A DNA stretch of 61,774 nt, filler included, from Platydemus manokwari (lineage: Eukaryota), in assembly GCA_037951405.1 (NCBI GenBank). It is 5 parts of 5 records of this genome, joined end to end, with 100 filler letters (N's around TTAATTAATTAA, not from the genome) between each part and the next. Parts side by side here need not be neighbours in the genome. Positions count along the whole stretch, not along the records: positions 49,940 to 61,774 come from JBBMOY010444445.1; 4 more parts are not named here. One strand, 5' to 3'. The notes below the pieces were generated by a model that was not told the DNA's origin, did no database searches, and saw only the letters and a program-made list of their open reading frames with translations. How positions within the stretch are numbered: the stretch's first letter is position 1; each line of letters begins with the position of its first letter. Below, one piece after another: positions 52,223 to 52,285 of this stretch. Position numbers and translations under genes: made by a program.

Positions 52223-52285
52223 TAGTGCTCTATTTCGGCCTTCCATGGCCTCATCAGTGCCTCGGGTCAGAGACAGATAGGACTA
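52223..52285 (-). ncRNA. Type III hammerhead ribozyme
   Basis: Minus strand: UAGUCCUAUC^UGUCUC-UGACCC-GAGGCA-CUGAUGA-GGCC-AUGGAA-GGCC-GAAA-UAGAGCACUA. Core CUGAUGA/GAAA intact; stem I 6 bp (one GU), stem II 4 bp, stem III 4 bp plus a distal 4 bp; AUC triplet, predicted cut between 52276 and 52275. Confidence 0.88.

Follow-up and report, generated by a model that had tools for sequence, protein, structure and literature searches.

The window analysed here is a 61,774-nt stretch of DNA from Platydemus manokwari (GenBank assembly GCA_037951405.1), in which five parts of five records are joined end to end with filler between them. Its last part, positions 49,940 to 61,774 (JBBMOY010444445.1), is an 11.8-kb piece with a short hammerhead motif lying in the 2.8-kb spacer between a protein kinase ORF and a myosin regulatory light-chain gene. 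The flanking genes are all on the strand of the motif, which is the minus strand:

53877-53020 (stop at 53020), minus strand: intronless protein kinase ORF of 285 aa (Pfam Pkinase, 7.6e-28; found by ORF and Pfam search)
~50215-50125 and 50084-49941, minus strand: exons of a myosin regulatory light chain, closest to the squid and scallop chains
58292-56192, minus strand: SNF2/Helicase_C (Rad54-like) exons (found by ORF and Pfam search)

About 0.7 kb (~740 nt) separates the motif from the kinase stop upstream of it, and about 2 kb from the first light-chain exon that can be recognised downstream. Among 5.8 billion proteins, the best relative of the kinase ORF is 33% identical, and the contig index holds no exact record of it; in a protein atlas, the ORF (53020-53877) is placed near the PIM-like kinases. 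Introns are around 40-50 nt long in both the light-chain gene (49941-50215) and the Rad54-like gene (56192-58292), and genes are found 2-3 kb apart. Short introns and close genes of this kind indicate a compact, AT-rich (28% G+C) animal genome. The animal is probably a spiralian.

Several simple repeats are also found in the piece. Upstream of the first recognisable light-chain exon, a 61-nt unit is tandemly duplicated in perfect register (50581-50702, the two units being 97% identical). On the higher-coordinate side of the SNF2-domain exon 58292-57984, which is upstream in the orientation of the gene, an extreme AT block of degenerate (AATAATTAAATAA)-like repeats extends over 58880-59190, with a G+C content as low as 6.7% in one 300-nt interval. 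Finally, an (ATAATT)n microsatellite of 7.3 copies (52410-52453) is found around 130 nt upstream of the hammerhead in the minus sense, and the contigs of the public sequencing run described below break there.

A hammerhead motif on the minus strand

Read on the minus strand, positions 52284-52227 contain every nucleotide of the hammerhead core together with an AUC cleavage triplet. The elements of the motif, all on the minus strand and read from the sequence, are as follows:

52277..52284, minus strand: helix III 5′ strand AGUCCUAU, with U16.1 at 52277; perfect complement of the family-consensus 3′ strand AUAGGACU (see below)
52276, minus strand: C17, the cleavage-site nucleotide of the AUC triplet, with the predicted cut at 52276/52275
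52258..52275, minus strand: helix I hairpin, UGUCUC (52275-52270) with GAGGCA (52263-52258), 6 bp
52269-52264, minus strand: loop 1, UGACCC in the window copy
52251..52257, minus strand: conserved core C3-A9, CUGAUGA
52237..52250, minus strand: helix II hairpin, GGCC (52250-52247) with GGCC (52240-52237), 4 bp, including G10.1-C11.1
52246-52241, minus strand: loop 2, AUGGAA
52236-52233, minus strand: core G12, A13 and A14 with A15.1, reading GAAA
52233-52227, minus strand: helix III 3′ strand AUAGAGC, for which the family consensus is AUAGGAC

All the invariant hammerhead nucleotides are found (C3-A9, G12-A14, the A15.1-U16.1 pair and C17), as is the usual G10.1-C11.1 pair. The two core strings are CUGAUGA at 52257-52251 and GAAA at 52236-52233; A52233 pairs with U52277 and C17 is at 52276, which makes the NUH triplet AUC. 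Helices I and II have 6 and 4 bp, respectively. Helix III of the window copy has four contiguous base pairs (AUAG/CUAU), then an A·C mismatch (52229/52281), then a G·U and a C-G pair, so that 6 of 7 positions are paired across the mismatch. Loops UGACCC and AUGGAA cap helices I and II, and the outer flanks make an open helix III, which is the type III topology. By its sequence and layout, the motif is a genuine type III hammerhead.

An earlier note on this DNA, made from the sequence alone, had drawn the same core, stems, loops (L1 UGACCC and L2 AUGGAA) and AUC triplet, and our minus-strand reading recovers each of them at the same place. It had also described a GC-rich island in AT-rich DNA, in agreement with the G+C content of 55% in the motif compared to 28% in the 500-nt flanks. 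The word intact, which the note used for the ribozyme, fits the core and helices I and II but not helix III, with its four contiguous base pairs and 6 of 7 positions paired across the mismatch.

The AUC register is fixed by the 6-bp stem I together with the family-consensus helix III, and the predicted cleavage site at 52276/52275 had thus been read correctly. The GUC register, which was the choice of cmscan, was rejected: stem I has no pairs in it, and the helix III of the family is at odds with it.

Two types of evidence bear on how far the motif exceeds chance. Running cmscan on the 11.8-kb piece returns the Rfam Hammerhead_3 model (RF00008), which is the best Rfam match and the sole one with E below 1; its score of 26.2 bits (E = 0.052) falls short of the gathering score of 48.5 bits. 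This score understates the fit because the model aligned the GUC register, with helix I unpaired; the threshold is missed all the same. In a scan of the piece with a type III descriptor, the motif is the single candidate, and it is the only CUGAUGA..GAAA match in the piece that has stems. As a control for chance, we applied the type III descriptor to 40 Mb of random sequence from a first-order Markov model matched to the piece in composition. Stems of at least 5/4/4 bp occurred in none of the candidates and stems of 5/4/3 bp in one, which gives a chance expectation below about 6e-4 per piece for a motif of such quality.

Folding of the window copy alone is less telling. The hammerhead fold (-15.2 kcal/mol) is 0.6 kcal/mol above the minimum free energy (MFE) structure (-15.8 kcal/mol), which is not the hammerhead fold, and the z-score is near 0, no better than shuffled sequences.

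Downstream of the motif in the minus sense, we also found part of a second copy:

52187..52213, minus strand: incomplete second copy of the 3′ half of the hammerhead (AUGAAGGCCGAAAAGGGACU), without a CUGAUGA of its own; 52223-52243 matches 52186-52204 at 86%

This partial duplicate of around 20 nt (52213-52187) is located 14 nt downstream of 52218, the last mapped base of the repeat copy, and pairing of its AGGGACU with the 5′ strand of helix III is possible. In the MFE structure of 52310-52180, the duplicate is indeed paired with the helix III 5′ strand (z-score -0.2). A discontinuous hammerhead that would use the 3′ half at 52201-52187 was considered and not adopted, given its A·A mismatch at 15.2/16.2, its 45-nt loop 2 and the z-score of -0.2.

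Related copies in the contigs of a public run

Only one public run, probably the source sample, contains the locus; the run index searched returned no RNA run. We aligned its contigs to positions 49940-55900 (5961 nt), and a total of 294 contigs aligned on this stretch. Depth reaches 1459 in the bin 52129-52327 compared to around 14-37 in the other bins within 1.5 kb, and the summed contig depth at position 52266 is 2712 compared to around 14 on the unique flanking contigs, with 54 contigs carrying the majority letter at this position. The pile-up over 52221-52302 is thus about 100-200-fold and, taken at face value, corresponds to copies on the order of 100-200, each at ≥90% identity; a sum of contig depths does not equal a copy number, and DNA of other organisms present in the run may contribute to it.

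The unique contigs end at 52276/52278, where a repeat would be expected to interrupt them. One 82-nt copy, aligned exactly to 52221-52302, lies in a contig of 2587 nt whose depth is that of single-copy DNA, which suggests that copies are dispersed in the same genome. Contig joints with short sides (20-25 letters) were set aside as AT-rich chance matches. Comparison of the window copy with the contigs and their consensus strings defines the following parts of the repeat:

52221..52302, minus strand: segment common to the repeat family at ≥90% identity (contig depth)
52303..52315, minus strand: upstream continuation of the repeat, including ACGGAU (52306-52301), the 5′ strand of the outer extension of helix III (compared with the loose-end consensus behind 52302)
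52218..52223, minus strand: AUCCAU, the 3′ strand of the outer extension, CUAUCCGU in the family, with a C·A mismatch in the window (compared with the family consensus)

A difference between copies was listed if it reached 10% of depth, among contigs that were ≥90% alike. Two positions alone are listed for 52248-52302, namely 52266 and 52267, both in loop 1; stem I, CUGAUGA and the 5′ strand of stem II show no listed difference among these contigs. Most other copies have U at 52266 and many also have G at 52267, so that the majority loop 1 reads UGAUCC or UGGUCC compared to UGACCC in the window.

Our picture of the family is drawn from 30-nt consensus strings (agreement 0.5-0.79) and summed contig depth, not from individual copies. 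On the 3′ side, the clipped consensuses of 22, 7 and 7 contigs (agreement 0.71, 0.79 and 0.5, respectively) still read the hammerhead 3′ half. All three loose-end consensuses over this half have GGAC compared to GAGC in the window, giving AUAGGACU, the exact complement of the window AGUCCUAU. Because of this complementarity, the helix III of the family has 8 bp, and a TC-to-CT change relative to the nearest subfamily breaks the 8-bp helix in the window copy. The next 8 nt of the consensus (CUAUCCGU) are complementary to ACGGAUAG, found in the family consensus on the upstream side (50 contigs with an agreement of 0.79), and ACGGAUAG/CUAUCCGU form an 8-bp outer extension of helix III across a bulge of around 20 nt. 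Of this extension, only ACGGAU/AUCCAU is left in the window copy, with one mismatch, and upstream the copy has lost 5 nt and 12 nt in two deletions. Not every copy has kept its core: one subfamily consensus of 7 contigs reads AAAA for GAAA, which is a dead core. Accordingly, some copies are dead, and many may be relics.

To describe the fold of the family, we used a composite of the window middle, the majority letters and the consensus strings, which is not a real sequence. Its MFE structure keeps both parts of helix III with the interior rearranged and is 1.3 kcal/mol more stable than the hammerhead fold; with one or the other loop 1 variant, the hammerhead fold is the MFE structure itself or lies no more than 1.3 kcal/mol from it. 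Shuffled versions of the composite core fold less well (z = -3.1). The other copies therefore improve the hammerhead, and neither chance nor a single domesticated locus predicts such an improvement.

Known hammerheads and a possible carrier element

According to reviews, the genomic hammerheads of animals are of type I, and type III is found in plants, viroid-like RNAs and some hepatitis delta virus (HDV)-like agents (PMC7761336, PMC7936874). The remark in the earlier note that type III is unusual in animals is in line with this literature; the motif is not without precedent, however, as the genomes of dipterans and termites have been reported to encode type III hammerheads (PMC7936874). In typical type III motifs, helix I has 6 bp and is capped by a loop of 6-8 nt, and helix II has 4 bp (PMC7936874). 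As read from its consensus, our family is of this canonical size, with a helix I of 6 bp and a 6-nt loop, a helix II of 4 bp and a 6-nt loop, and a helix III of 8 bp plus 8 bp.

The closest resemblance in build is to the hammerheads of plant LTR retrozymes and of hammerhead viroids and satellite RNAs (RF00008; PMC4918200, PMC6155905), in which helices I and II are capped and helix III is open. The 6-bp helix I with its 6-nt loop, the 4-bp helix II and the complete core are shared with plant retrozyme and viroid hammerheads, and a multi-copy presence in a eukaryotic genome is shared with the plant LTR retrozymes. Loop 2, on the other hand, has 6 nt here compared to the usual 4 in plant retrozyme and viroid type III motifs, the host is an animal, and the surroundings have 28% G+C compared to more than 55% in plant retrozymes. 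An LTR retrozyme is defined by two direct LTRs that each contain a type III hammerhead, 600-1000 nt apart, with a primer-binding site (PBS) and a polypurine tract (PPT). The window locus has, unlike these elements, no second hammerhead, LTR, PBS or PPT: one hammerhead is found in 11.8 kb, without long direct repeats.

With newt satellite 2, Schistosoma Sm-alpha and the coral, mussel and axolotl retrozymes (PMC7229834), the family shares the presence of a hammerhead in many copies of a low-G+C animal repeat. These metazoan non-LTR retrozymes and satellites have type I hammerheads (helix I open), with a helix III that is often weak, in tandem units of 150-450 bp. Here, in contrast, the topology is type III, the consensus helix III is long and no tandem unit or array is found at the locus.

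Type III topology is shared with the motifs of dipteran and termite genomes and of toad and termite HDV-like circular RNAs (PMC7936874), as well as with a motif of Drosophila pseudoobscura (PMC3088659), the genomic ones being from invertebrates. In these atypical type III hammerheads, a 5-bp helix I is followed by an internal loop and an extra hairpin, helix II has 6 bp, and the pseudoknot is 4 bp long (GCCR/YGGC), unlike the plain short helices found here. Among type III motifs, a difference of 2 bp in length between helices I and II is commonly tied to a pseudoknot (PMC3088659). Helices I and II of our motif differ by 2 bp, and a possible contact between loops 1 and 2 can be predicted by eye, UCC of the majority loop 1 with GGA (3 bp, compared to 2 bp in the window copy).

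Penelope-like elements carry minimal type I hammerheads, which are also animal and repeat-borne. In these, helix I is open and helix III is a tiny palindromic hairpin (GAAAYAGCUGUC). We scanned metagenome contigs for the exact pattern of stem II plus GAAAUAG and found 9 loci, all of them Penelope-type minimal type I hammerheads. Their stem II (GGCC...GGCC) is identical to that of our motif, but the permutation is different and there is no sequence relation outside the core. These nine matches were consequently rejected as copies of the family, being unrelated type I motifs with only the core and the GGCC stem II in common. The link to Penelope-like elements that the earlier note had proposed is not supported: the Penelope-type hammerhead is minimal type I, of a different build, and the piece contains no reverse transcriptase (RT) or GIY-YIG ORF and no corresponding Pfam hit.

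Other searches were likewise negative. ORF and Pfam searches of the 11.8-kb piece revealed no RT, GIY-YIG, endonuclease or transposase ORF, and the piece contains no second full hammerhead. At the locus itself we saw no LTR or long flanking direct repeats, no PBS, no poly(A), no tRNA-like head and no tandem unit beyond the 20-nt partial duplicate of the 3′ half. Pattern scans of viral contigs and of prokaryotic genomes gave no match to the motif, a translated probe (the 66-aa ORF over the motif) gave no candidate for other copies, and among the papers of the library searched none contains the exact motif sequence.

Readings of the locus

Taken together, we consider it probable that positions 52315-52218 of the minus strand are one mildly degenerate copy of an interspersed type III hammerhead repeat with copies in the order of 10^2. 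A minus-sense transcript of a family member would form a three-way junction and self-cleave on the 3′ side of the C in AUC, in the window copy between 52276 and 52275, and by the general hammerhead mechanism the products would have a 2′,3′-cyclic phosphate and a 5′-OH. Both the minus-sense transcription of family members and their self-cleavage are what we infer from the layout. Most likely, the family moves through RNA and is non-autonomous, resembling a retrozyme or a SINE, and the ribozyme would trim its transcript; this reading is drawn by analogy from all other hammerhead repeats of eukaryotes (PMC7229834, PMC4918200), and the type of element that carries the hammerhead is a guess. The window copy is probably a passive and slightly damaged insertion in the spacer between the kinase and light-chain genes, without a function for the host. 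It may still cleave, less efficiently than the consensus copies.

The simplest alternative is that the motif is a chance look-alike, a hammerhead-shaped string without ribozyme ancestry. In its favour, very many stretches of sequence were scanned, the Rfam score (26.2 bits, E 0.05) is below the gathering score and the window copy folds no better than shuffles. Against it stand an expected frequency below about 6e-4 per piece, a 55% G+C island within 28% G+C DNA and a segment repeated about 100-200-fold in which other copies make helix III perfect, which is not predicted by chance. We regard chance as extremely improbable. The earlier note had offered either a marker of an uncharacterised flatworm retrozyme or Penelope-related family or a domesticated self-cleaving element. 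The contig depth of about 100-200-fold over 52221-52302, which is not a copy number, and the improvement of helix III in the consensus bear out that the motif marks a repeat family. A domesticated ribozyme would be specific to this locus and act in cis, for example within an extended kinase 3′ UTR or in 5′ sequence of the light-chain gene. The hammerhead in the 3′ UTR of mammalian Clec2 genes is a precedent, the motif is on the same strand as both adjoining genes, and the hammerhead fold is energetically still within reach in the window copy. The motif is nevertheless multi-copy rather than a unique conserved locus, its window copy is worse than the family consensus in both helix III and the outer extension, and it stands ~0.7 kb past the kinase stop and ~2 kb before the light-chain exon in a compact genome. 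Domestication at this locus is thus highly unlikely.

Two other readings accept an origin in a ribozyme and differ from ours in what was copied. The locus could be the endogenised cDNA of an infectious circular RNA, viroid-like or deltavirus-like: such RNAs typically have the type III layout, motifs like it are present in the genomes of termites and dipterans, HDV-like type III hammerheads are reported from invertebrate genomes (PMC7936874), and the long extension of helix III resembles the rod-like context of viroid-like RNAs. We find this quite unlikely, given that the ribozyme is in one polarity only, that no delta-antigen-like or other ORF accompanies it, that the viral contigs gave zero matches and that the HDV-like hammerheads differ in their long interrupted helix I and 6-bp helix II; copies in the order of 10^2 with apparent subfamilies suggest a resident genomic repeat instead. 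Alternatively, the family could be a repeat at the DNA level, a satellite fragment or a MITE, with a fossil hammerhead in all copies, and ACGGAUAG/CUAUCCGU would then be the inverted repeats of the element. The copies do look short (around 82 nt aligned in the 2.6-kb unique contig), and the dead core of one subfamily consensus (AAAA for GAAA) is what a fossil would show. Yet the consensus folds as a full hammerhead, and the listed variation in the set at ≥90% identity is confined to loop 1, with none in the core and stems, which makes a purely fossil repeat unlikely.

Returning to the RNA-mediated element, we tentatively raise the possibility, which we hold to be the less probable outcome, that the copies in the order of 10^2 are an undescribed animal family of small non-autonomous retroelements whose RNA is processed, and perhaps circularised, by a canonical type III hammerhead of the plant and viroid style. 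If true, this would be the first example from a spiralian invertebrate, and it would bear on the origin of the type III hammerheads of plant retrozymes and HDV-like agents. A multi-copy type III family of canonical size in a non-insect invertebrate also widens the picture in which animals have type I hammerheads, and raises the question of whether a retrozyme or circular RNA system based on type III exists in animals. The practical gain is modest: one more repeat that bears a hammerhead, and a way into an animal type III hammerhead element that may be undescribed.

A minor observation concerns the nine metagenome contigs with Penelope-type motifs. These contigs (ERZ1740055.* and Ga0126336_10115059, 35-42% G+C) contain the string ccaugCUGAUGAGGCCUAAAAAGGCCGAAAYAGCUGUCcaugg, and one of them, L001, carries two type I motifs around 110 nt apart.
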